Source: Basidiobolus meristosporus CBS 931.73
Lineage: Eukaryota; Fungi; Basidiobolomycota
Direction of reading: 5' to 3'
NCBI GenBank assembly: GCA_002104905.1
Contig: MCFE01000051.1
Span: 1-64,000 of the forward strand
DNA length: 64,000 nt
The notes below the pieces were generated by a model. That model searched no databases. It saw only the letters and a program-made list of their open reading frames with translations, and was not told where the DNA came from. This document shows, piece by piece, positions 4,255-50,261 of this stretch. Positions within the stretch are counted from its first letter, which is position 1. Each line of letters opens with the position of its first letter. The position numbers and the translations under genes are program-made.

Positions 4255-6553
4255 CTACCAACCACGCAATCCATCGTTGGATTTGCGAAGCTTGGATTCC
4301 GAAGTGAAATAGAAGGGAATGAATCCGATCTTCCCGTTTTCCCAGCACTAGATTAACACAAATGGGTTAAGTTGGCGTGAATTGATCAGTAAATTCCCAA
4401 TGTTCGTTGCCTACCACACTCAACAAGGAGCCTCGCGAAAATTGGTTTGCAAACTGCATGGTCACAGCCTTGGGGTTGCTTTCGACTTCTGAATGCGCCT
4501 CTCCTATGCCCCAGCAGGGTCCTCGGATGAAGCCGCTAGATCCAATACAAATGATGAGGATTCTTCAAACATGTGATGGATCCATGTGTACGCTCTCACC
4601 TGGGCATCAAGGGATTTGTATCACCTAGCCATGAAGTTGGCCTCACAAGGAAAATTGCCAGTAGTTCCGAGCCCTCTGCGTCCCCATCAAAACTGACGAT
4701 CAATCGCTCCCCAGTCTGGTCAAGAGCAAGTTGTCGAATCGGTCCGCCAACACTACCAATAGCCAAAACATGATGTCAGTAAGAGAGTTGCGGTTGGCGA
4801 ACACGAGGTGCGCTTACGTTAGCACGCTTCCAGATGCAGTCTGTGTCGAGAATTCGGTCAAATCTTGGGGCGCACTGGTTTGGAAATCGAGGAAGGGCGC
4901 AGGCTTCACCAGATGAATGATATGGATGATCGCCTCACCCTGGATGGAGTAGAGTAGATTCCGGCTATCTGGGGACCAACAGATGCTCTACAGAGAATAT
5001 GGAGTTATCGGTTTGATGCTCAGATGAAGGGCGTCGTCCGAACACTATACCTTTGGCAAACCCCCAAGGTTCGGCAGAGTTCGACTCTCCCATGTCTTCG
5101 TCTCCCAAATTCTAATTACTTTGTTGCTGTGGTGAAGTAAAGGTGTGTTACGAAGGGACCGGATGAAATACTTGTAAATCGCCACCTACGTATGCGCAAC
5201 ACAGAGGTATGCACCATTGGGGCTCCATGCCATAGTTACAACCCCGCCGCCGATTCTTCTCAATGGGACTGCGCTTTCCAAAGCAACATCCCAAATGAGT
5301 ACCGATCCGTCTGCAGCCGATCCGGTTGCAAGATACTGCCCAGAAGGATCCCATGACAATGAGCTGATGTGTGTGTGTCCAGGGTATTTCAAAAAGTTCA
5401 TCCACGCTGGTCTAGCGCCCTCCGACTCTCTGGCGCAAGGAACAGACGGAACCGTGGTGGCAGTTAGTGGATCTTGGGCGACTCCCTCGCCAAAATCCAA
5501 AAACAATCTCCAGAGACAAACGCCATTACTAGAAAAGACACTGTGAGAAGATGTGGATGGTAAAGGCACTGAGATGGAATGTACTTTGTTCCCACGGCCA
5601 AGGTGGCGCCTGCGTTAGGTTTCCACTCAAGACAAGTGATGTTTTTCTGGAACTCGTGAGTAAGTCCTTGCGGGAACCAGGCTGTAATACAGAGTTAGGA
5701 CGTGTTATGGATGTGATAGCACTTGATTCTTTTCACGAACCTTCAGAATTCATGTCATACACGTATACAACGTCCATTCTATGGGCAACTGCGAACATCT
5801 GCTTGTATGGATGCCAGGAATAGGCCTTGACTGGGCTGTGGGATTTCTGATCCGTAGGCAATTCTACGGTGGGCTAAACAACAATGCACATGGCTTAAAA
5901 CGACGCTCTGAATCCAGGCTTTCGTGTTGTCGATGTACCTGCAGGAAAGAGTTTTTGAACGGCTCGATAAATTCCTCGGCCATGTTTAGGCCGTACTGAA
6001 TCAGATCACCAATCTTCCTGTAGAACATTGTCCAGATAAACATGCGCTCGATAAAAGTATCAAAGTGAGCCACCACCAACCACAGAGGAACATTCTCCAG
6101 CTTGCTTTCCCACCAAGGCTTCACTGCCACCGGTGCGTTCTTCAATCCAAGAGGGCGTTGAATGGGGACCGCTCTAGCGGGTTGGCATACATCATATGGC
6201 ACAACGATATGAGGATATAATACGCCCTATGGAACCAGCAATTAGGGGAAACAGTCATAACAAAAAGGCTTGGCGTTGAGCTTACCTCCGCTCTTACGTA
6301 CTTGTTAACATTGGGATCTTGGGGACCCCTCAGTGTTACTAATGGTTGATCGACGGATACTTGGTAAGTATCTGAGCGGGAAATATGATACGATACGAAC
6401 ACTCCATACATAGCTCAAAGTTCACTTCACCCAAGGTCACTTCGTCGGCATCTGGTGGCAAATGCGTTTGGGCTGTTAATCACCAACCAGATTCATTAGC
6501 TTGTGAAGGTTTCTGTTTCAGAAGAATTGGACAATACCAGAGAAATTCACCAT
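4255..6553 (-). CDS. AAAS: Aladin (WD40 nucleoporin), multi-exon
   Basis: N-terminal LPPDADEVTLGEVNFEL; SWHPYKQMFAVA; GHTHISSLSWDPSGQYLATGS...LIWDVALESAVPLRRIGGGV; C-terminal ALLVSVCWENGKIGFIPFYF. All resemble aladin motifs. Confidence 0.8.
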
Positions 6554-6874
6554 GTGATCTTTACTTTAGTAGGAAACGGATGCGTAAAAAGGCACAGATA
6601 TCACACTTGAAGCCACTTTAGCTATTGTCAGTTTATGACTAGGGCTTGATAATTTTCGTTACGCTGAAGGTAAACAAACCATCAATTCGAGAGAATAATA
6701 GTTATTTTCTTTCATGCAAATCTCCAATATAAACCAAGTTGATTTGGAACTTGGCATATTATTAAGCTTCTTTTGCACTTGGATAAAATCGAGAAGTTTC
6801 TTTTTTGGCAAGGGTCCCTAGCTTATGCCGCGAGTATTTTTTTTTCTGGTGGAAGTGAACGTTACTTGTGCGTG

Positions 6875-6882
6875 TATAAATA
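6875..6882 (+). promoter_or_regulatory. TATA box of the snoRNA host gene
   Basis: TATAAATA lies 30 nt upstream of a CTTTC pyrimidine start at 6905 and about 50 nt upstream of the first GTGAGT donor. Confidence 0.6.
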
Positions 6883-6971
6883 ATACTCAGCTGTTGTCAG
6901 TAGTCTTTCACTTTAGTTCTTTATGGTGAGTGTCTATTTCTCTTTATTACATTCTCGTTTGAATGGTCATT

Positions 6972-7047
6972 GTGATGATTACATAGTTCAACTGAAGTAC
7001 CCTTACTAAGTACTATGTCGAGTTAATTTTCTTTCGCTCCTATCTGA
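6972..7047 (+). ncRNA. snR60: Box C/D snoRNA snR60/U80(SNORD80)/Z15 family, copy 1
   Basis: C box GTGATGA, D' CTGA 6992-6995, D box CTGA 7044-7047. D' guide CATAGTTCA pairs with LSU rRNA UGAACUAUG (yeast Am817). D guide TCTTTCGCTCCTAT pairs with AUAGGGGCGAAAGA (yeast Gm908). Confidence 0.92.
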
Positions 7048-7201
7048 CACCTTCATACGGAATTACATTCGTTACCTACCTAAAGCAATATGCTAACATG
7101 TTTCTCAGTGTATTTAGTGTTGGCCCTACGGCGAGTGGTGCGAGTCTAAAACGACAGCAATGTAAGTACCTTACACAACTGAGAACCCATTTCAATGCAC
7201 T

Positions 7202-7277
7202 ATGATGATTACATAGTTCAACTGAAGTACTCTTACTAAGTACTCTGTCGAGTTGATTTTCTTTCGCTCCTATCTGA
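7202..7277 (+). ncRNA. snR60: Box C/D snoRNA snR60 family, copy 2
   Basis: ATGATGA...CTGA with the same two guides; differs from the other copies at only a few spacer positions. Confidence 0.92.
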
Positions 7278-7434
7278 TACATTCAACCCCACAATTCCAA
7301 TTTATATGATATTTCATTATTCTAATCCTCTCTTGCAGATGAAACAGTTGCTCAAGTCTGCTTCACGGCTAACCGGCTCACAATAATAGTAAGTGATCTT
7401 TTCTATTTCGGAATGGAATATTGAAGAAGGCACT

Positions 7435-7510
7435 GTGATGATTACATAGTTCAACTGAAGTACTCTTACTAAGTACTATGTCGAGTTAATTTTCTTTCGC
7501 TCCTATCTGA
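7435..7510 (+). ncRNA. snR60: Box C/D snoRNA snR60 family, copy 3
   Basis: GTGATGA 7435-7441 ... CTGA 7507-7510, with identical guides. Confidence 0.92.
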
Positions 7511-8180
7511 ACCTCTTCATTCATCCGAATATCCGATTCTCATTGATAACCTGGATTAACCTGATGTTCCGTTTTAGGTTGTAAATCCTTACCCGAGCCG
7601 TGTGATGCCTTAATATATGTATATAATCAGCTTCAATAAATTGTTCTATTTTTGAAAGCCACCGAATATGATCCAATTATGATTCGAATGGTTTGGCGGG
7701 GCGGGAGTAGGGAGCAAATGGGGTTCGAGAACAATGGTGTGATGCTGAAATTCCCCACGGAATGTTCGGCAATTAGGATCCTGGGTTAAAGGTGTATTGA
7801 GTTAGATCCAATTCACAAATCGATGTGGCAAGAGGTATAGTGTACACAGTTGATGAAATCTTTTATGAATTTTGGACTCGAAACAATGAAAATTTGAACC
7901 GGAGTGAAGGTTTTGTTTGACGCACCGATACTGGGGGAATCAAGGTTTGAAATGAGTGCTGCTCAATGTAGCTGGTGAAGAGGAAAGTATGGTTTTCCCA
8001 ATAGGTGCTATGTACATATGGGTGGTAGAGATCCTGCGAGATGGTGACTCGTGTCTCAAAAGGGTGAGGAAAGGGGGATGGGGGTCCTGTATTTCGAGCG
8101 GGGTTTTTTTAGATACGCATTAAGTGAAGATATGGCTTTTGGATTGAAGTTCTTAATATACAGGGAAAACCATTGGCCAT

Positions 8181-9104
8181 TTAACGGACAATCACCCGGC
8201 TATCTTGCCACCGTGGAGAAGCGCAGGAGGCGGTGGAGTTGGGAACGTCCTTATTGAATGGTTCAGTGCTAGAAAGGGAGCTAACGCCCGATTTTAGCTT
8301 GAACGAAGGGTTTGTGCTTTTCTCTTCCTTGACCTCAATCTCCATGGCTACTGGAGAATCGGCATCATTGTTGGGAACATGCGCATCAGACTTGTTGCGC
8401 ATCGCCTCCAGCTCCAGACGTAATCTTTTGTTTTCATCCTCCATCCTGGACATTGAGTCCCGGATTGACTTGATTTCGTTCTGGTACTGCTGGACTTGCT
8501 GCTCCAAGGTAGAGATGTATTCCTTTCTTCTGACACGGAAGTTTCTTGCCGATATCTTGTTGCGAAGCTGTCGGCGCTCTTTGGAGCTGAGATTTTGGAA
8601 GTTGGGGTTGGCTGGGTCGAGCTCCGCCTCCAACTCGGCCGAAGAGGTGCGGTGAGTAGACTTGGGAGGAGACGGAGCGATGGGCAAGGGGGCTGCTGTG
8701 GGGGAGGAGGGGGCGATGGTGGTGGTAGTGGTGGTGTTTTTGGGATTGACAACGGGAGTTGGAGAGACGGTGGGTGGCTGAACTGAGTGCATAAGGTTGG
8801 GTGGGCCATACAGCAGCGTGGAGTCCGCCACACCAAATTGAGAGGCTGGCTCCGAACCCAGAAGGTTGCCAAGTAGCATGTCAATATCAGTTGACTCAGT
8901 CTTCAGGTTAGTCACGGAGGGAGTAATTTGGCTTGAAGGTGGGAGTTGACCAGACAACTCATTGCCAAAGTACAGGCGAAACAAATCAGCATTGCTTATA
9001 TCCTGGTTTTGGGGCTCGGACACATACTTGGGATCAATGAATGCGTCAAACACATCACTAACTTCACCTTCAACGACACCTTGGGTCATGTTGTTTGCAG
9101 CCAT
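8181..9104 (-). CDS. bZIP transcription factor (true C-terminus may extend further via splicing)
   Basis: Basic region and zipper: LSSKERRQLRNKISARNFRVRRKEYISTLEQQVQQYQNEIKSIRDSMSRMEDENKRLRLEL. Probable ATG at 9104. Confidence 0.88.
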   Translation of the reverse strand: MAANNMTQGVVEGEVSDVFDAFIDPKYVSEPQNQDISNADLFRLYFGNELSGQLPPSSQITPSVTNLKTESTDIDMLLGNLLGSEPASQFGVADSTLLYGPPNLMHSVQPPTVSPTPVVNPKNTTTTTTIAPSSPTAAPLPIAPSPPKSTHRTSSAELEAELDPANPNFQNLSSKERRQLRNKISARNFRVRRKEYISTLEQQVQQYQNEIKSIRDSMSRMEDENKRLRLELEAMRNKSDAHVPNNDADSPVAMEIEVKEEKSTNPSFKLKSGVSSLSSTEPFNKDVPNSTASCASPRWQDSRVIVR

Positions 9105-11814
9105 AATCAAATTGGTCTTGATAGGGTGGAGGGATATATACAAGATTTACAAAAGATAACGGTTGAGAGATACTTCTAAACGATCGAAGAAACCAGCAAG
9201 CAAAGGCTTAGTTTTGAAATTGGTGACGATGAGCCTGGTTGGCAACCATGGCAGCTGACCTGCTTATATAGAGAAATCTCGAGCGCATCCAGGATCTGAT
9301 CAAGGAACAAAACAATCAATAATTCGCATGATAAAAGCCTACACATGCTGATAAAAACACATTGGTTTCAATATCAAACGTGTATTTCAGCTCGATATGT
9401 GGGAGAAAGTTCGGATACCCTGGTAAATCTGGACAAACCTCCCCCCTCCTATCCGCCCATATTCATCTAGGTCTCATTCAGTACTGACCTGTCTTATCTA
9501 TCCGTTTATTTATACTCCATTCTATTTGGAGCTACTCTGTGCCTGGCATCGGTTGATCATTTAGCTTGGCAGCGCTCTGATTGGCCAAGAGGCAAGGAAT
9601 ATCGGATATATCTTACTGACCCTGATTCCAGATATGGAGCAGTGTAATGCATTATGTATAAATTAAATCAATAAAGCATTTTTGGTATTCCACCAGCAGC
9701 TTAAATGTCAATACAGCGATTTAATAATGATAAGATTTGAAACCGATTCTTTAAAGCATGGTATGAGGGCGGGTATGGGTTTTGTCCGAGGAGTAGCAGC
9801 TTCCAAGGGCTGGTCCGCGTTGCCGTGGCCCTCTCTGTCCTTTTTTACTTTCCCGCTGTTTCATTCATCTTAGAAACAGAAACCAAAACCAGTGAAGCAG
9901 GTAGGACGAAACGGAATAGGAGTCCAAGCCAACAGAGTATGGCTTGTTCGTTGCATAAATTTATTCGTTCAGTAGGTTGAAAATCTCTGGTCTATCAATG
10001 GCGATCAAGAAACCATGTTTCTCCCTTGTTAGAGAGACAGGCAATGCACTCGTCTAAGACGACATCACCCACTCCAACGGGAATGATCAGGTTTGCCTAA
10101 ATAATGGCATTATTCAAGACACCGCCTATGATTTCATGGAAGAGCTAGATATCTCTACTCGGGGGATTTCATTCGCTAGTGCGGATATAACGGCTGGCTG
10201 GTATACGGTGCCACAACTAGTAATGCATGCAATACTTCATTATTTATGGGAATCTCCCAAATCGGAACTAGCCTTGACTAGATTCTCTCGCAACGCACAA
10301 GGTTAGATGGGAAAGTGAGTGTGCAACCATTCCGCCTGGCTGCACTTGATATTATGAAATTGTGACGCAAATAACTGCCTACTCTAAGTAATGCATGCCA
10401 TAATGAAATTTACTGGGTGATAACGGGTATACTTCCGGTCAATGTCACAATTAGAGGCGATCTGGATCAGCATTGTTGACATCGGATTGTACAATCGATG
10501 ATAGATTGTGGATATTTTTAACCACGGAACCACATCAAACCTAAGCCGCATTGAATACCCGCACTGAATACCCGCATTGTATCCTTTGAAGCTCCACAAT
10601 AAGGTTTGTTCCCTCAGGCATCTCTCCGGTCCACTGGAATTGACCATATCGGCTCTGATACCTAGTTGCAAGTGGCTTAGCCAGCTGGTATGATTCCTTG
10701 CAGTTGGATAATGCTGATTGTTGCTTGTAATGAGGGCGTGTGTGTATTACCAGTAGTACGAAATAATTACAGTTTCTTCAAGAGATTTGTACAGGTGGGT
10801 TAATAGGCTTTGTGTAGTACAGTTTTTAATTACTGGGGGCTAGTGTCATTATTACAACTGATCTTCATTGCTCCCCGTTACTTGTACAATAAAGGGAGGT
10901 CGTCATTGTATAACCTGCTTGGTCAGGCTAGGAGGGTTTTGAGGTTGATTTCCAGCTTTTTAAAGGCCTGAGAACGCCACCGCTCAACCTGCTGGATATC
11001 CGTATTGTTGCCAATTAATTGCTGGCATTGTTATTGGAAAATATCGGAATCTTTCTGTGCACCCGTCATTGGTTACTCAAGGAGATGACTGTTCTGTGAT
11101 TAAGCGCCTCCTAAAACATCAACACAGCATTGAACCATCCTCATCCTTGAAGTACTTTCAGACTAGATGGTCAACCAGGCCCTTGGGAAGCTAAATAGGA
11201 GCACTGGGTGACCTACCTGGAACTTTCTAAAAATGAACCTCGGATATCCAGGAATAGGATTTAACAAGTCATCCCTTTCCGGACGAATCCGGAGGGCGTA
11301 TAGCCGACATGCTATCAAATAAAGTCGAGGATTAGCCGCCGAAGTCTGTGTGGCTTCTCAGACTTAACAGCTCATCACTTGGTTTTATAGAGGAATGTGT
11401 GCTGATGTGGGGTAGCTGTAGGGTGTGGGGTAGTGAGATCCTTGACTTGCCAGTCTCTAAGCGCTAGCCATGGTTCGCCCAGTCTCCTCATATCAGTGGC
11501 TCAGTCTAGGTTGGCGTACATCCAATAGAGCATCTAGAATTCACTCAGGCCGTCAAAGGCCCAAAACCGAGTCCATCAAACCACGTTCCATAAAATCAGC
11601 TGATGATCTTCATCCCGCCACTATTTCCTCAGAATACATGGATGCCACCAAGATGCCACCATTTTGCCTCGGATTACATGGATTTATTATACGATATGTA
11701 GTAGTCAGTGAAGAGGGGGGAAAGAGGGTAGGAGGATTGGTCGAAATGAACATATAGAGTAGGACCCAGTCAGACTTTAGATGTACACTACACTGGCCTT
11801 TACCTACGGAGAAA

Positions 11815-12252
11815 CTAACCGCCGTGAAGGGTAGAGATGAAGACGATCTCATCATTATTTTGAAGTTGATACTCCAGCTCACCCTCCAACTCCCAATCGG
11901 CATCGTTCACCAAAACGAGAATGCCTGGGCGACTGTTCAAATAAGTGAGTTTTTACATAGTGTTTGAGGTATTCTGCGGGCATACTTACACAGTGTTCCC
12001 ACTAACAAAAAGCTCGGGTCTTTCGGCAAGTACATTCTCCTTGATGTACGCAATGAGGTCCTCTAGGTTGGTGGGTTGTCCCTTAGCATTGACTGCCCCA
12101 ATCTCAACAACCTTCTCCTTCTCGTTGTTGAACAACAGCTCCATGCCACCGCTAAGGATCATTCACTGTTAGCAACCAATAGTGGTACTTTTGACTTGAA
12201 ATATACGCAAAAGGACCAAATACCTGAATTGTAGGTTTATCTTGAGACTCAT
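11815..12252 (-). CDS. URM1: Ubiquitin-related modifier Urm1, 3 exons
   Basis: Spliced [19 protein letters not shown]...[50 protein letters not shown]. Confidence 0.95.
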
Positions 12253-12478
12253 CTTTCGTTATGTCTCTTGAACGTTCACGAGAAGTCCTACACAAACCAG
12301 CCTGACCGCACCTACTTATTCCAGAATATTTTTTCATTGGAAAAAAAAAGTTCACCATGCTTCGGAGGATTTTGATCAGATGCGATTTATCCAAATATCT
12401 CGGAAATTTTGGTTTATTACTCAATTTGAGGTTTAGTACTGCAAATTGCCAGCAAGGTTAGGTGAAGAATAGTTTTCC

Positions 12479-13705
12479 ATGTCGGGTATGGGTCCACACA
12501 ACTTCAAAGCAACTTGCTGTATATACTCATCGATTCATTAAACACCCCAGTTATTAAAAGCGGTTCTGTGGTGGTGACCGGCGGTACTCGCGGTATCGGA
12601 TTGAGCATAGCAAGGTCATTTGCCTCGCAAGGAAATCAAGTGTTCGTTTTGTCAAGAAATACCCAAGCTGTCAACAGAGTTGCGACCGAGTTGGGAGAGA
12701 TAAACAGTACGGTGGAGCATGTTGGGCTTGTTTGTGATGTCAGCCGGGTGGAGGAGGTGGAGAGTGCGTGCAAAGTACTGGTCTCGGCTCAACAAATTAA
12801 ATATTCGGAAGCGGCGATTAAAACCAAAATTTCTAGGAAATCTCAGCTAAAGGAGCGGTAAAATGCTTGATTAATGCGGCTGGTAAGTAGGCTATTCCTG
12901 CGCTCTCAAACGTGGCCCTCTTTGATGGTGAGTGCCTAGGAATATCCCACGACGGGCTGCTTGCTCGTGTTCGTCAGTCAGATATAGATGCCATACTGAA
13001 TACGAATCTGGTCGGAGCCATCAATATGTCCAAATATTTGTTGAGACCGCTGCTGAAGTCTCGCGAAGGTAACTATCACTTTGCACACTAGTGTATTGCA
13101 TTACAGCCACTTAGCTATTTGTTACAAGGCTGCATCATCAACTTGTCGAGCGTTGTTGGGCTCTCGGGAAATGTTGGTCAATCAGTCTACAGCGCTTCTA
13201 AAGCCGGGCTCATAGGTAGCGTTGGATCAATCGAGGTCTTTAGCGTGTATTCGCCTAATGTGAGAAACATTCCACCCCAGGCTTCACCAAATCATTGGCA
13301 AAGGAGCTGGCACCTAAAAACATACGTGTCAATGCGATCGCGCCGGGTTTCATCGACACAGACATGACTAGTGGTGAGTGAATTGGCCCCTTCCACACAG
13401 TGGATGTAGTTGTTTATTCTCTTTTGTAACATCAGGGATTTCCGAAGTAAGCAAGCTAGACTTGATTGAGCGAATTGCTCTGAGAAGGTTCGGGGCACCT
13501 GAGGTACCAAGGGTTTTGATGAATTCTCTCGAGCTTCTTCTGACATCAAATGTGTAGGAAATTGCCGACGCAGCCATGTTTTTGGCACAAGCAAAATACA
13601 TTACTGGCCAGGTAATATACTTGTGCTTCCCCTTCACCTAGCCTATCGAACTTACAGTGCTCTATCTTATAGACGTTGGTGGTGGACGGAGGAATGTCTT
13701 TGTGA
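12479..13705 (+). CDS. OAR1: 3-oxoacyl-[ACP] reductase (FabG/CBR4-like SDR), multi-exon
   Basis: TGGTRGIG Rossmann motif, LINAAG, NLSSVVG, catalytic [24 protein letters not shown]|TLVVDGG. Confidence 0.9.
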
Positions 13706-40038: not shown

Positions 40039-43000
40039 ATGGGTAGTAGAAAACCAATTGGCTTATCGGAAGATGGCCACAACCTCGTCAACCTGTCCTC
40101 TTTCAATGAAGACGAAGTCACCTCAACCCTCCGTGATTTCTACCAACAGGATAGCATATTCACTAGAATTGGTACCCGCACCCTTGTCTCCCTGAACCCA
40201 TACAAGCCTCTGGACAACTTCAACGAAGTTGCCCTCCAAAGATACCTCGATGACTACAAGGATATCTCTGGCCAAAGACAGGTGTTGCCCCCTCACATAT
40301 TCGAAACTGTTAGTAACGCTTACTTGGATATGAGAAGGACTGGCTACGACCAAGCCATCATTTTCAGGTAATGTTTTCAGTCGCCGTGTTCCCCGGTTTC
40401 CTCGATTAACTCTGATGTGTTTCTAGTGGTGAGACTGGCGGTGGCAAGTCCTACATCAAAAGCATGGGTCTTCGCATGTTGGCTGCATTGAGAGAATCTT
40501 CGAAAAAGGACTCGCACATCATGGGCCAAATCCAAGATGCCACCAACATCCTGGAGGCGTTTGGTAACGCCCAGACCTTGCACAACAACAACGCCTCCCG
40601 CTTCGGGAATTACACCGAAGTTCAATTCAACGAGCGTGGTAGAGTCATTGGAGCCAAGATCATGGACTATCTCCTGGAAAAGTCCCGGGTCGTGTCCCCC
40701 AACGTCAACGAATCGAACTTCCATATATTCTACTACTTACTCTCCGGAGCCACTGATGAAGAGAGAAGCCACCTAAAATTGGCCGACACTAACACATATC
40801 TTGCCAGCGGATCCCGCTTCAGTGAGCAGGACATGGCTATGTTCAATACCCTACGGGCATCTATGAAGTCCCTTGGCTTCAACAAGAAATACCAAAACCA
40901 AATCTTCAGACTGTTGGCCGCGATTCTCCATCTAGGCAATATCACCTTCATGGACCACCCAAACCGCCCTAACGAAGCCACCTCCATCAAAAATGAAGAT
41001 GAGTTGCTGACCGTTGCCGAATTCCTCGGGGTCAACGCCACGGATCTAGCGAGCGTCCTCACCTACAAGTCCATCATCATTCGCAAGGAGATCTGTACCA
41101 CCTTCCTCAACGCCAAAAAGGCCGAGGTCCAGCGAGACAGCCTATCAAAGGCGCTTTACTCGCTTCTGTTCAGCTGGATTGTCGAGTTCATCAACACCAA
41201 ACTCTGCTCCGACACCCAGAGCAACTTCATCGGGCTGGTGGATATGCCCGGGTTCCAGAGCTTCGAGTCCAACGGATTCGAGCAGTTCTGCGTTAACTTC
41301 ACCAACGAACGCATTCACAACTTCATCAACCACCACATCTTCGAGGCATTCAATGAGGAGTACCAGGAGCAGGGAATCGCTGCACCGGAGGTTCTCTACT
41401 TCGACAACTCCCCTTGTCTTGACCTGTTCATGAAGCCAAACTCCGGCTTGATAGCCCTGATGGATAAGAAGGCCCTTGGCCAGGCAGAGTCCGATGGAGA
41501 GACTTTGTTGGAGAGCTTCAGGAAACAACACTCATCCCACAGCAACTTCCACCCACCACCGAAGGGTTCCCATGGCAACTTTGCCATTCAGCATTTCGCT
41601 GGCCAGGTGGCCTACCGCATTGATGAATTCTCGGAGAAGAACAATGACACCATTGGCTCGGACTTCATTGGTCTCTTCCGTGGTGGCTCCGATATGGCCT
41701 CCACTAGCAATCCCTTCATCGCTGGACTGTTCAGCGACAAGACTGTAGCATACGAGAGCCATCCCAGAAACGAGTCGACAATCGTTGCCGCCCAAACCCC
41801 AGCCATCCCCACCAGAAAGCCTTCCATGCGTCGTCCTCGTACCAAGCCCGGTAAAGATACCAAGAAGGTTACAGGTGTAACCACTCAGCTGAAGGGGGCT
41901 TTGGATGAGTTGGTGGAGACCCTGCAGGAGACTGTTCCATGGTTTGTTCTGTGTATTCGCCCCAACGATACCCAAAAGCCCGGCCAGTTCGACTCCCGCA
42001 AAGTCAAACTCCAGGTTAGATACATGGGACTTGCCGAAATAGCAAACCGTCGTCAGATGGATTACACCACTTCCCTGACCCATGACGAGTTTCTGGAACG
42101 CTATGCGACGGTGATTGAGCCTATGGGGTTGGACCAAACCCGGGACGCCAAGCAGAAGTGTCAAACCACCTGCACCATCTTCGGTTGGAACGAGAAAGAG
42201 ATGGTGGTTGGCGCAACCAAAGTCTACCTCGGCTTTGATGCCTGGAGGGATCTTGAGGACAATCTTCGTCTGATCGAGGCCGATGCCAAGAAGCGCAAGA
42301 AGGATGGTGAGCCAAGTTCTCCTCATGGTTCCATGGATATCCCTACCTCCCCGGCAGCCGTGCCCGCCACATTCCGATCGATCTCGTCCCCCACTCTTCG
42401 GGACTCCCAATCCTATGCTACTAGCGCTGACACTCGTTCCTTCTACAGTGACGATGACTACTTCGAGCGTCCAGAAAACCAGTCTGCCATGACATCGGAA
42501 ATCTTTGCCCCACAGCCTACCATGAAGGGCCCCGAGGTCTCCAAGGTCGAGGCGCAGTTGCCGGTGGAAGAGAAAGAGCCGGTGTCGAAGCAGCGCAAGC
42601 GATGGGTCTGTTGCACATGGTTCCTCACCTGGTGGATCCCCACTTTCACCCTGACCACCTGTGGTAGAATGAAGCGGCCTGACATCCGGATGGCCTGGCG
42701 TGAAAAGACCGCCCTCTGCATCCTGATCCTGTTCATTTGCGCCATCGTTGTGTTCTTCTTGATCTTCTTCGGAAATATCATTTGCCCCCGCCAGCATGTC
42801 TACTCTCCCAGCGAACTCGCCAGCTACACCACCAAAGATAAGCCGTACCTGGCTATCCGTGGTGAAGTGTTTGACTTCAAAGATCTCAACCACTATGGTA
42901 TCACGTTCAATGATATGAAGAATTTCGCCGGAACCGATGCTAGCTTGCTTTTCCCTGTCCAAGTCAACATGGTGTGTGACGGGTGGAACGGCCTTCAGAT

Positions 43001-45701
43001 CGACCCTTCGGTGAACATTGAGAATTACACCCTGGAGCCGTACTCCCGTTACCATGATTATCGCTTTGCTGCCATCGGAAACGACTACGCGAAAAACGAT
43101 TATTACACCAATAACCTGATGGTTTACATGCGCAAGAAGTTCGCCAAAGGTCAAGTGGCTTATTCGACCAAGGCCGTTCGCCAGAAGGCGCAAACTGTTA
43201 ATGGTGGCGTATGGGGAATTGTCGATAACAAGGTGTACGACTTGACCAGATACAAGGCTGCTTTTACCAGCAACCCTCCAGGATGGGGGGATAGAGGTAA
43301 CGTCAACCTGGACTTCCTGGATCCAAATCTTTACGACACCTTTAAGAGCAACAACGGACAGGATGTCACTGGCAACATTAATGCGCTCTATGCCGCTCAA
43401 CCAGAGCAGAAGGCGCAGATGATGAGGTGTCTTCGGAATCTGTTTTATGCCGGTGTCGTGGATACCAGAAATTCGCCCCAATGCATGTTCTCGAATTATT
43501 TCCTACTTGCTGCCACCGTTTTCATGATGTCCATCATTCTCTTCAAGTTCTTGGCTGCGTTGCAACTTGGTTCATTAAGAGAGCCAGAAGATCACGACAA
43601 GTTTGTGGTTTGTCAGGTCCCTTGTTATACCGAAGGCGAAGACTCTCTCAAGAGAACCATCGACTCGCTTGCTGTGCTGAAGTATGATGATAAGCGCAAG
43701 CTTCTGTTTGTTGTTGCTGATGGTATGATCATCGGCGGTGGAAATGACAAGCCCACTCCCATGATTGTGTTGGATATCCTTGGCCATGACGCATCCGTGG
43801 AGCCGGAGCCTTTGGCCTACAAGGCGCTAGGCGAGGGTAATCAGCAGCTCAACATGGGCAAGGTGTACACCGGTCTTTACGAATGTTCGGGCCACGTTGT
43901 GCCATACATCGTTGTGGTGAAGATAGGAAAGCCTTCCGAACGCTCCAGACCAGGCAATCGTGGTAAACGTGACTCGCAGTTGATCCTCATGCAGTTCTTC
44001 AACAAGGTCCACTTCAACACCGAGATGACTCCGCTTGAGCTCGAGATGTACCATCAGATCAAGAATGTGATCGGTGTGGACCCATTCTTCTACGAGTATG
44101 TATTAATGGTGGATGCCGATACCATCGTTCTGCCAGACTCGCTCAACCGAATGATCTCCTGCATGCTTAACGATTCCAAGATCATGGGTCTCTGTGGAGA
44201 AACGCAGCTGTTGAATGAGAAGGCCTCGTTCATCACCATGATCCAAGTCTTCGAGTATTTCATTTCCCATCATTTGAACAAGGCCTTCGAGTCGCTGTTC
44301 GGATCGGTCACCTGCCTACCCGGTTGCTTCTGTATGTATCGCTTCCGTACCCCAATCAAGAACCAGCCTCTCCTGATCGCCAACGTGATCATCGAGGAGT
44401 ATTCCGAGAACAAGGTCGACACCCTCCACAAGAAGAATTTGCTCTCGCTTGGTGAGGATCGTTACCTGACCACGTTGATGTTGAAGCACTTCAACTACAA
44501 CAAGATGACTTTCACGCCCGATGCCAAGTGTCAAACCAACGCCCCTGATGAGTGGTCGGTGTTGTTGTCGCAGCGGCGTCGTTGGATCAACTCCACCATC
44601 CATAACCTGGCCGAGTTGCTGTATCTTCCTCGTCTTTGCGGTTTCTGCTGCTTCTCCATGAGATTCGTTGTGTTCATCGATTTGCTTTCGACCATCATCA
44701 TGCCGGTGCAGTGTTTCTACCTTGGCTTCCTTTTGTACAAGGTGATCACCGACCCATCCTCCTTCCCGGTCATCGCCATCATCATGCTTGCCGCCATCTA
44801 CGGCTTCCAGATCTTCATCTTCCTGATCAAACGTCAATGGCAGCACATTGGCTGGATGATTGTATACCTTCTCTCCCTACCCATCTTCAGTCTCTTCCTC
44901 CCGGTCTACGCCTTCTGGCACTTTGACGACTTCTCTTGGGGTAACACCCGTGTGGTCGTTGGTGAGAAGGGTAGCGTCACCCACGTCTCGACCGAGGAGA
45001 AGTTTGACCCCGCCTCGGTGCCCCTCAAGAAATGGAGTGATTACGAGCAAGAGCTTTGGGAAGTTGGCACCCACGTGTCCCACGAATCCAAAGGATCCAG
45101 CCCGTCAGCCCGGGAGAGCTATCGCAGTCGCTCCAAGTCCCGCATCCCGGATAACACCTCGGTGTACACAGGCATGGCGCCCATTTCAACCCACAGCATC
45201 CCTGACCCATACCTACCCACCGGCATGCGTGGCCGCTCCGTTTCTCCTGCTCCTCCATCAATCCATAGTCATAGCATGTCGCCCTATCCAGCTGGCCCGA
45301 TGCCAGGTCGGAATCCATCCCATTCTGTAGATCGCAACTCGAGGGCCTACTCAGTGGCCAGGTCGGAATACAGGGATTACTCCCGCAGCCGTGGGCCCAC
45401 GCTGGATGTTCCTGGATACAACCCTCGCGCAAGCAATGCCTCCAACCTCTCCCCCATGATGGGTGCTCCTGGCTATCATCAGATGCAGCCACTTGGCAGC
45501 CGACCTGGCAGTGTGATCAATCCTGTCTCGGACCATGAGATCATGGAGGAGATCCGACACATCCTGTCCACTGCCAACCTAATGTCCATCACCAAGAAGC
45601 AAGTTCGTGACGAACTGTCCCGCCATTTCGGAATGGACATGACCCACAAGAAGGAATACATTAATAATTGCATTGACATGATCCTCCAAGGTCAGTTGTA
45701 A
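40039..45701 (+). CDS. Class V myosin-motor chitin synthase (CsmA-like), 1 intron (40368-40426)
   Basis: Myosin P-loop GETGGGKS, switch I NNNASRFG, switch II DMPGFQ; cytochrome b5-like region; CHS motifs GEDRYL and QRRRW; C-terminal DEK_C (ITKKQVRDEL...F). Confidence 0.96.
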
Positions 45702-46069: not shown

Positions 46070-48562
46070 TTACAATCCAACGGTTGCTTTCGTGTGGCGG
46101 AAGCGGACTGGCATCGGCACGGCCAGATTCACCTCCACCTCCGGTTGGACCGTCTCTTTCTCGATCACTAGCTTCGGCATGGTGCTCTCGATCTCCTTCA
46201 CCTCGCACCCGGCCGCCAGCAACTCCTTCCGCATCTGCTCGAGGTCCCTTTGGTGGGCGGCGGCCGGGGTGCTCTCCTCCGCCTCCTGCCCTGGCTCCTC
46301 AAACGTCTCGCTGGTCACTTGGATGCCCATCTTCTTCATTAGCCGGGGCATGCTGGCGCGGTATAGGAGATGTCCGTTGATCATGTCGGTGAGGTCGAGG
46401 TTCTCCAGGTTCGGGACGTCCGCCACCGCACGTAGTCCCGCGATGGGCCGACCAACCGCGCTGGCCCGGTAAAGAAATCCTGGGGGAGGAGGGGTCAGTT
46501 GGGTGGGCATGTGATTTGCCGGTCGAGGAGGAACGCTCGCTTACCTAGCACCCAATCCGTTTTCACGTAACCGTTCACGAATCTCCCCGAGACCACGCTG
46601 GCCGCTTGCTTCCACTGCTTGGTGCTTGCTGTGACTGGGGTTCCGAAGAGGTAGACATCTTCCACTATACCGTACGCGTTGACTCGAGCAAGTTCTAGCA
46701 GGCAGTAGAAGATCACTCGGGACCCTAGAGAAAAGCCGACCAGGCTTACCGGGCGGTGCCCTTGAACATGGTTCAGTAGAGTGTCGGCCAAGACCTATTC
46801 GTCAAGAGAGGGAAAGAAAGAGGGGGGGGGGATTCAGTTGATGGAGTAAGTGTCGCTTTTCAATGTCGTCCGAACGTACCAAGCCTGCTTTACGGGCCTT
46901 GTCTAATCCGATGGACCATGGGTTGTCGATCAAGTACCCGATTTTGGTGAGGGCCAAAGGCCATGCCAAAGCGGCCAGTAGGGCGTGCAGCATGGTGTGC
47001 TGCAAGATTTGCTGTGTCGCGAAGCTGACAACCTATGCGGGGGCTTAGTCGGTCGTACCCAACGGAGCGGGGAAATCCCAGGAATCCTTACCTCACCAGC
47101 GACCATCTTCAGGGCGTTTCCTAGCTGTCTCAAGACCTCCGTTTCCCACGACAGACTGAAATGATCGCCGTTGTCCGGGTCCACGGTGGAGAACGGGAGG
47201 GTCGCCTCGTCATCTTCTCCGGTCAACCACCCGCCAATGGTGATCAGGACGTTCGCGCGTTTGGCATCGTGCTGAGGGATGAATTGGAAGGTGCTGATCC
47301 CTTTGGTCCTTTTGGCCATCTTCTTACCGGCCAGCCCTAAACCGAATTCCGATGTGAGTTCGCCCAACGGAGATCATGCGAACTACGCTCTCTTACCTGC
47401 TCCGGTCACTGCTCCCCCTGTGGTGATGAGCGCGATCCCTCCGGTACTTCCTAAAAACGCCGTGGTCCCTCCCACTCCCAGTCCGGTGAACGCGGCCCCG
47501 ATACCGGCCCCGATCACCGGCGCAAGCAGTCCCGCGGAAAGTCCGAGCACCAGACTGCCCCCTGTGGAATCCGGTCAAATCACGTTACTACGGGTGGACC
47601 ACAGTCCCAAATGGCTCCCTTGAAAACTACCTGTCACCGCGAGACCCATCAGGATGAGCCGTTTCGTTTTGTTCCGCTTGTTACGCCCGTAGGACTCCTT
47701 GTCGTGTTTCAACGTTTCCGCCACCTCGTAGAGCTGCAGCTGCTGGGTGACGTTCTTCTCCAGGTCCACCACGTCCACCCAACCGAGCCCCAGCAGCCCC
47801 GCCACCCGTTTCAGCAGCACCCGGGCCCGGGGATCGTACATGTTGTCCGAGATGCACAGCAGAAACAGGTCGCAGATAATCGTCCACCGGATGTCGATGG
47901 TGACCGTGTGCTGGATCTCGGCGAAGTTCTTCGAGTTCCTGGCCGTCTCGGGGGTCTCGAGCGTCTCCACCGTAACACTCTGCCCCTTCTCCACCAACGA
48001 TCTGCACATGTCCTCCGCCACCAGGCCGTGGCGCCTCAGCTGTAGCAGCATCTCCTGTTCTGGGAAAGGTCCGGGTCAATCAACGTCGAGGGTGGGCGGG
48101 TGTGGTCCGCCGCTGTTCAACCTTCCGCGGGGCTCACTTACCTTTGGGGTCCACATCCATGTGCGCGAACAGCTTCTGCAGCAGTCGTTTGGAGAAGTTC
48201 GCCCAGCTCCCCCGCGCCGCGCCGAACTCCTCCTCCGCAAGGGACTCCTCCAACTCCGCCAGCACCACGGTGCACAGCCCGACGTAGGCGAACTTTCGCT
48301 GCTCGTCAAAGATGTCCTTCGTGGTGTGGATGCTCTGGAACTTCCCTTCGGCCGGCGGGGTGGCCGAGGAATACGGGGGCGAGGGGTCGTGTGGGGCTTC
48401 GTAGGAGCAGTACGCCTGGAGGGTGGTGTCGGTGAAGGAGTCCTCCGTGTCGTCGTCGAAGAGTTCCGAAAGCCCGGTGGTTCGCGTGGGGAGCTTCTCC
48501 TGGTCCAAAGTGATCGAATACTTGGTCGGGTCAGACCGTTCCTCCTCCGGTGAGAACTCCAT
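46070..48562 (-). CDS. DUF726 / TMCO4 / Mil1-like alpha/beta-hydrolase-fold membrane protein, multi-exon
   Basis: IDIRWTIICDLFL...YDPRARVLL; GLSAGLLAPVIGAG; GHRPVSLVGFSLGSRVIFYCLLELA; VSGRFVNGY...DWVL. Confidence 0.9.
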
Positions 48563-50261
48563 GGTTGGAACTGGTGCTGAAGGGAAATGTGAAGGGGAAG
48601 CGGGGTGTGGGTCGTCGACGGTTGGTTGTTCTTGGTGTGTGTTTCGTGGGGTCGTCGTCTCGTAACCTTACGAGGAGAGTGGTGGTGGTGGTGGGGGGGG
48701 AAGTTTTGGGAACGGGCGGTGGTCTGGTCGAACGGATATATAGTCACGTAGGGGGATTCGAACGGACGCTGCAATCCACACATGGACGAAAATTTCGATC
48801 CGGTGTCAGGTGACCCGGGAGAGGGGTGGAAATCGATTTCATTAAACCTGGGTTGCCAAGAATAGATTGGGCTCATTTACGCACACCTGTCCATGAATTC
48901 CATTCTTCCTTCGAACATTTCCACTGGCCCACTCAGGTGTGATTCGCAAATCCGGTGTCCCCTGACCATACATGCTGTCAGACTCTCGTGCGCTAGGATC
49001 TCAACCCGAGATCCCCGGTCCCGCCGTGGTAATATGCGTTCCGAATGACCGATTTACACATCGCTCATCCTTGTGATGGTCTCCATCATTGGCTTGAGAA
49101 ACGTGGGGCTGCCCACATTGTATGGTCGGATCTTCAACGATATCGACCCATCCAGTGGCCAATCACGTTCCCAATGATCAGAGCGGGTTTCTTCCAGAGT
49201 AGGATGATCCGGATGATCCAGTCCAGGCATCTCAGGTGCTTGGCGCTAGTGGGTGGGTCTTGGCGAAGTGGTGCGGTTTACTGGGGGATGGACCGGTGAG
49301 GTTTGGTGACACGTACGTGGCTAGGATCAGTCGAACCATCTTGAGCCTCCAGGGTACCTGGACCGTCTAACCTGCTATGGCGGAGCTAGTTTTGAGCGAG
49401 TGCCACATACTCGCTGATTGATGCCGGCCAGAACCAATCTACCAAGCGGCATGACGTCGGAAAATCCCCCGCCAAGGCACTGGCCTTGCTGCCCGCTTCC
49501 ACCACCATTCGCCCTGCATAGTCCCGGGGTTCCCGGTTGTCTAATCCCGCTCCCGCACTGCTCTGTCTAACCACCTCCGCAGATCCCCGTATCCCGCATC
49601 GAACTGCAAGTACGCCACCTATGTCCACACTGTGTCTCCTGGTTTGGCCCCAACCCTGTCTCTGATCCTTTCCACGGTGATGGCTGCGTAGACAACCACA
49701 TGCCAAGTGGAATCTCCAATCCATTGCTAGATAAGTCCATCTCTGAGACCATCTCGACCACCCATGTACTCCCCCTCCACCCGCTTGGGGTGGTGGAGGC
49801 ACCCCGGTTCTCTTCTTCTTGTTCCCTGGGAGCTAGGCGGGTGCTTGGCTGGGTGACAAGCCTGATGGTTTGGTACGCCAAGAATCCCACCTGGTGTGTA
49901 AGATGCACCCAGCATCATGCACCAGATAGTCCTGGAAATTCAGGCGTGGTGAGGTCTCACTGATCCTGGTGGAGTCAGTGATTGGCATCAGTTAGACACC
50001 AACCTCACCTTCAGGGTAGTGGGTTCAGCCAAAGCTGGGGATCAGGCATTTTGGCAATACCCTACAGGATGTAAAGCAGGGATGCATGGGAGGGGACTGT
50101 CAACTCCAAGCCTAAAACCTGTATTGATGGTGCATCATGTGGCTCCACTGGCTGATCTGTATGTTATGTAGTATTGATTTGAAATTTGGCTGGCAGGTGG
50201 TTGATTCTCTGCCTGGATTGGTGCTCCAGAGGTTGTATTCCTGGCCTCTCACCCTGTGATG

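Follow-up and report, generated by a model that had tools for sequence, protein, structure and literature searches.

A predicted spliced, non-coding host gene with an snR60/U80-type snoRNA in each of three introns in Basidiobolus meristosporus

The first 64,000 nucleotides of contig MCFE01000051.1 from Basidiobolus meristosporus CBS 931.73, read on the forward strand and here called the window, contain an unannotated gene that appears to act as a non-coding host for box C/D small nucleolar RNAs (snoRNAs). It is located between the gene for aladin, which is divergently oriented, and the gene for a bZIP protein, which is convergent. The bZIP protein is encoded by an open reading frame (ORF) at positions 8184–9104 of the minus strand, and MCFE01000051.1 of assembly GCA_002104905.1 encodes its exact sequence. 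The aladin gene codes for 512 amino acids including the aladin domain, and its start maps to position 6553 on the minus strand according to our own mapping from the public contig coordinates; about 320 nt separate the aladin ATG from the TATA box of the host gene. The public gene calls for MCFE01000051.1 contain none between bZIP and aladin.

At the curated cut-off, the sole Rfam hits in the window are three matches to RF00309 (snR60/Z15/Z230/Z193/J17). All three span the full model (1–98) and score 48.0–48.9 bits at a gathering score of 41 bits, with E values of 3e-5 to 5e-5 computed for the whole 64-kb window. They are found on the plus strand at 6963–7053 (48.0 bits), 7192–7285 (48.9 bits) and 7424–7518 (48.4 bits). 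The cores of the three copies, measured from C box to D box, occupy 6972–7047, 7202–7277 and 7435–7510, respectively. Each core comprises 76 nt and their mutual identity is 95–99%, copy 2 being 95–96% identical to copies 1 and 3. Copy-specific variants are present at window positions 6972/7202, 7001, 7015/7245 and 7255. A repeat search likewise returned one family of three 88-nt copies with spacings of 230 and 233 nt, and the intron sequence outside the cores is essentially unalignable among the three introns. An earlier note on this DNA had described one complete C/D snoRNA of the snR60/U80 type in each intron and had suggested this Rfam search, and the three matches above the gathering score are in full agreement with it. 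A relaxed Rfam scan of positions 6300–8300 provided no further RNA that could be accepted; the single additional match, to ceN22 at 7839–7907 (E 0.37, 21 bits at a cut-off of 45), was set aside as chance.

The anatomy of the snoRNA is illustrated by copy 1, all elements being on the plus strand. The C box at 6972–6978 is followed by the D' guide at about 6982–6991, the D' box at 6992–6995, an internal hairpin of 5 bp at 6996–7014 and a degenerate C' box (UAUGU) at about 7014–7018. A spacer of 11 nt leads to the D guide at 7030–7043 and the D box at 7044–7047. The C box (RUGAUGA), the D' box (CUGA) and the D box (CUGA) are invariant in all eight copies compared, three from the window and five from Basidiobolus ranarum, which are described below. 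Both guides are intact in all three window copies, and the guide elements agree with the family consensus of RF00309, which is built from snR60, Z15 and relatives, deviating only in a single base at the 5' terminus of the D' guide. The hairpin joining D' and C' is conserved, and its pairing is kept in three of the B. ranarum copies through a double change from A-U to G-C that probably happened only once. Copy 1 is predicted to have a terminal stem of about 7 bp; the strongest of the three stems is that of copy 3, with 7 pairs, one unpaired base and −8.1 kcal/mol.

For snR60, the targets are 25S A817 via the D' guide and 25S G908 via the D guide (PMC5824354), and its orthologue CD48 of Neurospora crassa, which is intronic, has the same target pair (PMC2780460). 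The targets of the window snoRNA were sought with a pattern consisting of the reverse complements of both guides separated by a free gap, which was run against genome contigs of bacterial assemblies. At least 120 contigs matched, and all four that were tested turned out to be contaminants carrying eukaryotic large subunit (LSU) ribosomal RNA (RF02543). The same dual pattern found no match in viral contigs. Among the 120 LSU matches listed, the gap is constant, since the nucleotides facing the fifth guide position lie exactly 91 nt apart. This equals 908 minus 817 and fits the equivalents of yeast A817 and G908. In the complete LSU present on contig L037, the D guide faces a G at position 910 with the fifth nucleotide from the D box, whereas the target of the D' guide falls on position 819 by our own arithmetic from the match coordinates. 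The D guide forms 14 bp with the eukaryotic LSU (13 Watson-Crick pairs and one G-U pair). The D' guide forms nine contiguous Watson-Crick pairs with UGAACUAUG, in which the target A faces the fifth nucleotide from D'; a gapped site for this guide at LSU position 1878 was regarded as spurious and the contiguous 9-bp site was taken instead. The prediction made in the earlier note that the snoRNA guides methylation at the equivalents of LSU Am817 and Gm908 is thereby matched by guide complementarity as well as by site spacing.

The three cores are embedded in what looks like a complete spliced transcription unit on the plus strand. A TATA box (TATAAATA) at 6875–6882 is the sole plus-strand TATAWAWR motif within 6500–7700. 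The first exon is placed at 6904–6925, where the start is taken from the pyrimidine-rich TCTTTCA 29 nt after the TATA box, and it ends with ATG directly before GTGAGT. Intron 1 (6926–7108, 183 nt) starts with this GTGAGT, has the branch motif GCTAACA and reaches its first AG at 7107–7108, with an alternative AG at 7116–7117. Exon 2 (7109–7161, 53 nt) is bounded by predicted splice sites and has no counterpart of conserved sequence in B. ranarum. Intron 2 (7162–7338, 177 nt) begins with GTAAGT and contains the branch motif TCTAATC, the first AG at 7337–7338 and an alternative AG at 7346–7347. Exon 3 (7339–7388, 50 nt) likewise follows from predicted splice sites. Intron 3 (7389–7577, 189 nt) begins with GTAAGT, offers the branch candidates ATTGATA and ATTAACC and ends with the AG at 7576–7577. 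The last exon, exon 4 (7578–7660), begins with GTTGTAAATCCT, and its 3' end is placed about 20 nt past the poly(A) signal AATAAA at 7635–7640, which is the sole plus-strand AATAAA within 6800–8200.

The motif GTRAGT occurs exactly three times on the plus strand between 6800 and 7700 (at 6926, 7162 and 7389), each time 40–46 nt before a C box, at a background density of 0.56 per kb. Each core is then followed by a YTRAY branch motif and by an AG 61–67 nt past the D box. In the RNA spliced in this way (about 220 nt), the longest ORF starting with ATG has 15 codons. The elements named in the earlier note, namely the TATA box, four tiny exons devoid of a meaningful ORF, three GT-AG introns with branch points and AATAAA, are therefore all seen in the sequence. 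Its junctions 6925^7109, 7161^7339 and 7388^7578 match the first AG after the branch point, but those of introns 1 and 2 are uncertain by 9 nt due to the second AG.

The same arrangement is present in a second species. The bZIP protein of B. ranarum is the best non-self relative of the window bZIP (83% identity), and its locus, L001, shows the order bZIP, gap, aladin, FKBP, DM9 and DHHC. The order DHHC-DM9-aladin-array-bZIP is common to both loci; the FKBP gene call that separates aladin from DM9 in B. ranarum was not located in the window. Within the gap between bZIP and aladin, five copies of RF00309 (43.6–51.2 bits) are found at 11492–12582; they recur about every 250 nt and run in the direction opposite to bZIP. 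Thus, the synteny search beside aladin that had been proposed in the earlier note revealed a five-copy array at the syntenic locus. Here again, no gene is called between bZIP and aladin in the public annotation of B. ranarum. The search with aladin returned only B. ranarum within the genus; neither a third Basidiobolus species nor a more distant case of synteny was found by it. At the paralogous bZIP loci (L002 of B. ranarum and L003, L244 and L245 of B. meristosporus), no snR60 reaches the Rfam gathering score, and a motif search of L002 and L003 gave no guide remnants. Among the loci looked at, the array is thus confined to the one between aladin and bZIP.

Taken over both species, the geometry of the units is uniform. 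In all eight, the C box is preceded at 40–53 nt by a 5' splice site (GTGAGT, GTAAGT, GTAGGT or GTAAGC), and the D box is followed by a YTRAY branch A at 48–60 nt and by a first AG at 60–86 nt. For unit 3 of the window, the branch value refers to ATTAACC, which was used instead of the first YTRAY met by the script, 36 nt past the D box. This geometry fits the position reported to be optimal for intronic box C/D snoRNAs, a rule of about 70 nt (quoted in PMC1821038) that is also seen in N. crassa (PMC2780460). Apart from these signals, the similarity among the intron flanks does not exceed that of shuffled sequence (z about 0). Exceptions are found in B. ranarum, namely the recent duplicate pair R1/R2 (z about 16) and, more weakly, the upstream flanks of R2, R3 and R5 (z about 4). 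Since the signals are kept in eight of eight units while nearly all of the flanking sequence has diverged to the level of shuffled sequence, the conservation of the splice signals is due to selection, and recent shared ancestry alone does not account for it.

This bears directly on the possibility that the copies are released from an unspliced polycistronic precursor, which is cut by an endonuclease of the RNase III/Rnt1 type and trimmed, the GT...AG signals being incidental. Splice-free tandem clusters are well known in yeast and plants, and metagenome contig L207 harbors a dense snR60 cluster with spacers of 60–130 nt that looks of such a type. Nevertheless, in Basidiobolus every one of the eight units has retained, at set distances from the snoRNA, a strong 5' splice site together with a branch motif and an AG, within spacers of which almost all other sequence has diverged to randomness. 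The probability of three GTRAGT motifs falling into the right 14-nt slots by chance is about 5e-7 (own arithmetic from the motif density of the window), and extended stem-loops of the Rnt1 type are not predicted in the cores with 12-nt flanks, to which the folding was limited. A precursor of this kind is considered unlikely.

Five of the eight introns contain two AGs exactly 9 nt apart, 60–61 and 69–70 nt past the D box. These pairs are located at 7107–7117 and 7337–7347 of the window and at 12428–12437, 12179–12188 and 11940–11949 of L001. They could be a conserved tandem acceptor and could give rise to alternative 3' splice sites.

The ends of the unit are conserved as well. In each species, one TATA box (TATAAATA) precedes the first unit and one AATAAA follows the last. 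The sequence TGTATAAATA is present before the first unit in both species, at L001 12677 in B. ranarum, and exon 1 ends with ATG|GTGAGT in both. TCTTTCA follows the TATA box by 20 nt in B. ranarum, which gives a range of 20–29 nt for the two species; a 5'-terminal oligopyrimidine (TOP) start is a vertebrate hallmark, regulation of this kind not being established for fungi. The last exon starts with GTTGTAAATCCT in both, the first 12 nt being identical, and the AATAAA of B. ranarum is found at the same relative place as that of the window. If each copy were an independent gene with its own promoter, the apparent exons would be promoter or spacer DNA. The stand-alone snR60 gene of Saccharomyces cerevisiae offers a precedent for this. 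In Basidiobolus, the sole TATA box before the first unit and the sole AATAAA after the last one argue against it in both species. Furthermore, only 40–53 nt are available between the 5' splice site and the C box, and the spacers share no conserved promoter-like motif, which leaves hardly any probability for independent genes.

The coding potential of the transcript is negligible in both species. The spliced RNA of B. ranarum would be about 390 nt long with a longest ATG ORF of 18 codons, which is unrelated to the 15-codon ORF of the window, so that no peptide is shared. The internal exons, two in the window and four in B. ranarum, are not alignable between the species on inspection, and the snoRNA cores of the introns (84–89% identical between the species) are better conserved than the exons. 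It could still be argued that the spliced RNA itself is functional, as micropeptide template or regulatory long non-coding RNA, and that the snoRNAs are passengers. The ATG at the end of exon 1 and the 12 identical nucleotides of the last exon would be in line with this, and some vertebrate hosts, for example GAS5, do have RNA functions. However, no ORF exceeds 18 codons, no peptide is common to both species, the internal exons differ in sequence as well as in number, and the conserved pieces lie at the splice junctions and around the poly(A) signal, which are the places where signals for processing would be expected anyway. A function of the host RNA is therefore regarded as very improbable.

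Together, the conserved splice signals, the single TATA box and AATAAA and the lack of an ORF support a spliced non-coding host with a single promoter and a single terminator. With good confidence, the locus can be read as a spliced, non-coding RNA polymerase II host with one snR60/U80-type snoRNA in each of three introns, and the intronic snoRNA is proposed to be its only product of value. Several features weigh against this reading. The C' box is represented by only a degenerate YAUGU after the internal hairpin, copy 2 having CUGU, and the predicted terminal stems are weak in copy 2 of the window (4 bp) and in copies 1–3 of B. ranarum. The D' duplex of 9 bp, scored on the common LSU sequence, is close to the minimum length for a functional guide. 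Finally, with a start as implied by the TATA box, exon 1 would be only about 20 nt long.

Transcription, splicing, processing, methylation and decay are here predicted from the sequence features, and the following pathway is envisaged for the host with its three intronic snoRNAs. A primary transcript of about 760 nt would start just after the TATA box at 6875, end after the AATAAA at 7635 and lose three introns of about 180 nt by splicing. Within each intron, the snoRNA is placed about 48 nt ahead of the branch point, a position that would couple the assembly of the small nucleolar ribonucleoprotein particle (snoRNP) to splicing. After debranching, exonucleases would trim the intron back to the snoRNP. 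The mature RNA would then guide 2'-O-methylation at two LSU sites, the equivalent of A817 via D' and the equivalent of G908 via D. The spliced exons (about 220 nt) would probably be discarded by nonsense-mediated decay. The spliced RNA is a probable substrate of this pathway because translation from the first AUG would meet a stop after three codons, ahead of the exon junctions.

The comparison of the two species also provides hints on how such an array evolves. In B. ranarum, the alignment of units 1–3 covers both the intron and the exon after it, which indicates that the duplicated module consists of an intron plus an exon. The array would thus have grown by tandem duplication of these modules, to three in the window and five in B. 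ranarum, and would yield several snoRNAs per transcription event. Core identity is 93–100% within a species and 84–89% between species. All seven fixed differences between the species are found in alignment columns 60–70, that is, in the 11-nt spacer between C' and the D guide, which has no known constraint and is uniform among the copies of each species. A uniform spacer within flanks that have mostly diverged beyond alignment suggests gene conversion limited to the cores. It is tentatively proposed, at less than even probability, that the cores evolve in concert by short-tract gene conversion confined to the 76-nt cores; a further possible implication is that snoRNA dosage is increased throughout the Basidiobolus genome via intron-plus-exon duplication, a habit largely absent from fungi such as Neurospora. 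As an alternative for the uniform spacers, with two species compared, the arrays may have expanded independently after an early change.

Some further observations were made around the host gene and in the remaining window. Between aladin and the host gene, a block of about 75 nt at 6639–6712 is well conserved with B. ranarum, its surroundings not being so. It is situated approximately 90–160 nt upstream of the aladin ATG and 165–235 nt upstream of the TATA box of the host gene, and no Rfam match covers it. This block could belong to the 5' untranslated region (UTR) or promoter of aladin or could be a shared bidirectional element. On the other side of the array, several short blocks conserved with B. 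ranarum are found at 7900–8183, downstream of the stop codon of bZIP on the minus strand, and are presumably elements of the bZIP 3' UTR. Far away from the array, an unbroken ORF of 1745 amino acids on the plus strand (40464–45701) combines a chitin synthase, a myosin motor, a cytochrome b5 and a DEK_C domain. It is an ordinary fungal chitin synthase gene of the class V/VII type, and it accounts for part of the rise in G+C to 0.51 at 40–46 kb. The G+C content is 0.58 at 46–50 kb and then falls sharply to 0.37–0.38 at 50–56 kb. Two overlapping ORFs of about 267 amino acids at 47747–48876 have no Pfam match.

The closest known counterpart of the array is DmSnR60 a–d of Drosophila melanogaster, a set of four isoforms that each occupy their own intron of mfl, about 70 nt upstream of its 3' splice site (PMC1821038). 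The host was first described as the non-coding dUhg6, and the introns are located in the 3' UTR of mfl/Nop60B (PMC1821038). Both systems belong to the snR60 family, with dual D'/D guides for two LSU sites and near-identical isoforms that are placed one per intron and arose by local duplication. In contrast to Basidiobolus, the Drosophila introns are part of alternative 3' UTRs of a protein-coding gene, the dyskerin homologue, and the transcript is shared with an H/ACA snoRNA and snm60 RNAs. The Basidiobolus host is stand-alone and non-coding, carries nothing else and has three copies (five in B. ranarum) instead of four, in an early-diverging fungus.

With the UHG/GAS5-type hosts of vertebrates and the UHG-like cluster hosts of N. 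crassa (PMC2780460), the gene shares transcription by RNA polymerase II as proposed here, short and poorly conserved exons and tiny ORFs. As in these hosts, each intron contains one box C/D snoRNA, set at a constant distance from the 3' splice site. The UHG/GAS5-type and N. crassa hosts, however, carry different snoRNAs per host, whereas the Basidiobolus host carries the same snoRNA in every intron. Human U80 (SNORD80), the orthologous guide, sits in GAS5. In S. cerevisiae, snR60 is single-copy and independently transcribed. It resembles the Basidiobolus snoRNA in its two targets, 25S A817 (D') and G908 (D) (PMC5824354). The snoRNAs of N. crassa are nearly all single-copy, which its authors tentatively link to RIP (PMC2780460).

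Arrays of one family are also known from mammals. In SNORD115/116-type arrays, each copy has its own intron of a non-coding host. Both SNORD115/116 and SNORD113/114 consist of tandem repeats of single snoRNA families; a common primary transcript gives rise to SNORD115 and SNORD116, and the copy number of SNORD115/116 differs between species (PMC12429941). The array described here resembles them as a tandem of a single C/D family in which the copy number varies by species and the copies are homogenised within species. On the contrary, the mammalian arrays comprise dozens of copies of orphan guides devoid of an rRNA target and are confined to imprinted loci of eutherians, whereas the Basidiobolus array is small and encodes a canonical, ancient rRNA methylation guide.

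Environmental eukaryotes have tandem arrays of snR60 as well. In a metagenome scan, seven of 120 snR60-bearing contigs, most of which are short, contained at least two copies, and three of them contained three to five in tandem. Four copies each are found on L206 (1083–2254) and L232 (676–1484), with a period of about 365–390 nt in AT-rich DNA. The dense cluster on L207 (about 800–1400), with the spacers given above, has five copies, two of them degenerate, and a plant-like look. Among 84 cores parsed from the metagenome snR60 contigs, none is Basidiobolus-like, the best core identity being 68%. In the text of a published survey of fungal snoRNAs (PMC5824354), a search returned neither Basidiobolus nor Zoopagomycota or Entomophthoromycotina.

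The earlier note had considered three copies of one snoRNA in a single host to be unusual. This view cannot be kept in the light of DmSnR60 a–d, the SNORD115/116 and SNORD113/114 repeats and the metagenome arrays: a gene with the same snoRNA in each intron is an already known kind of gene and not a new one, and the current understanding of snoRNA biogenesis is unchanged. What is gained is a missing gene for the public annotations of B. meristosporus and B. ranarum, and the extension of both UHG-like non-coding hosts and same-snoRNA-per-intron arrays to the early-diverging fungal lineage of Basidiobolus. Furthermore, the locus represents a small and clean case for the duplication of intron-plus-exon modules, with three versus five units in sister species, and for intronic snoRNA copies that stay uniform while their introns diverge.

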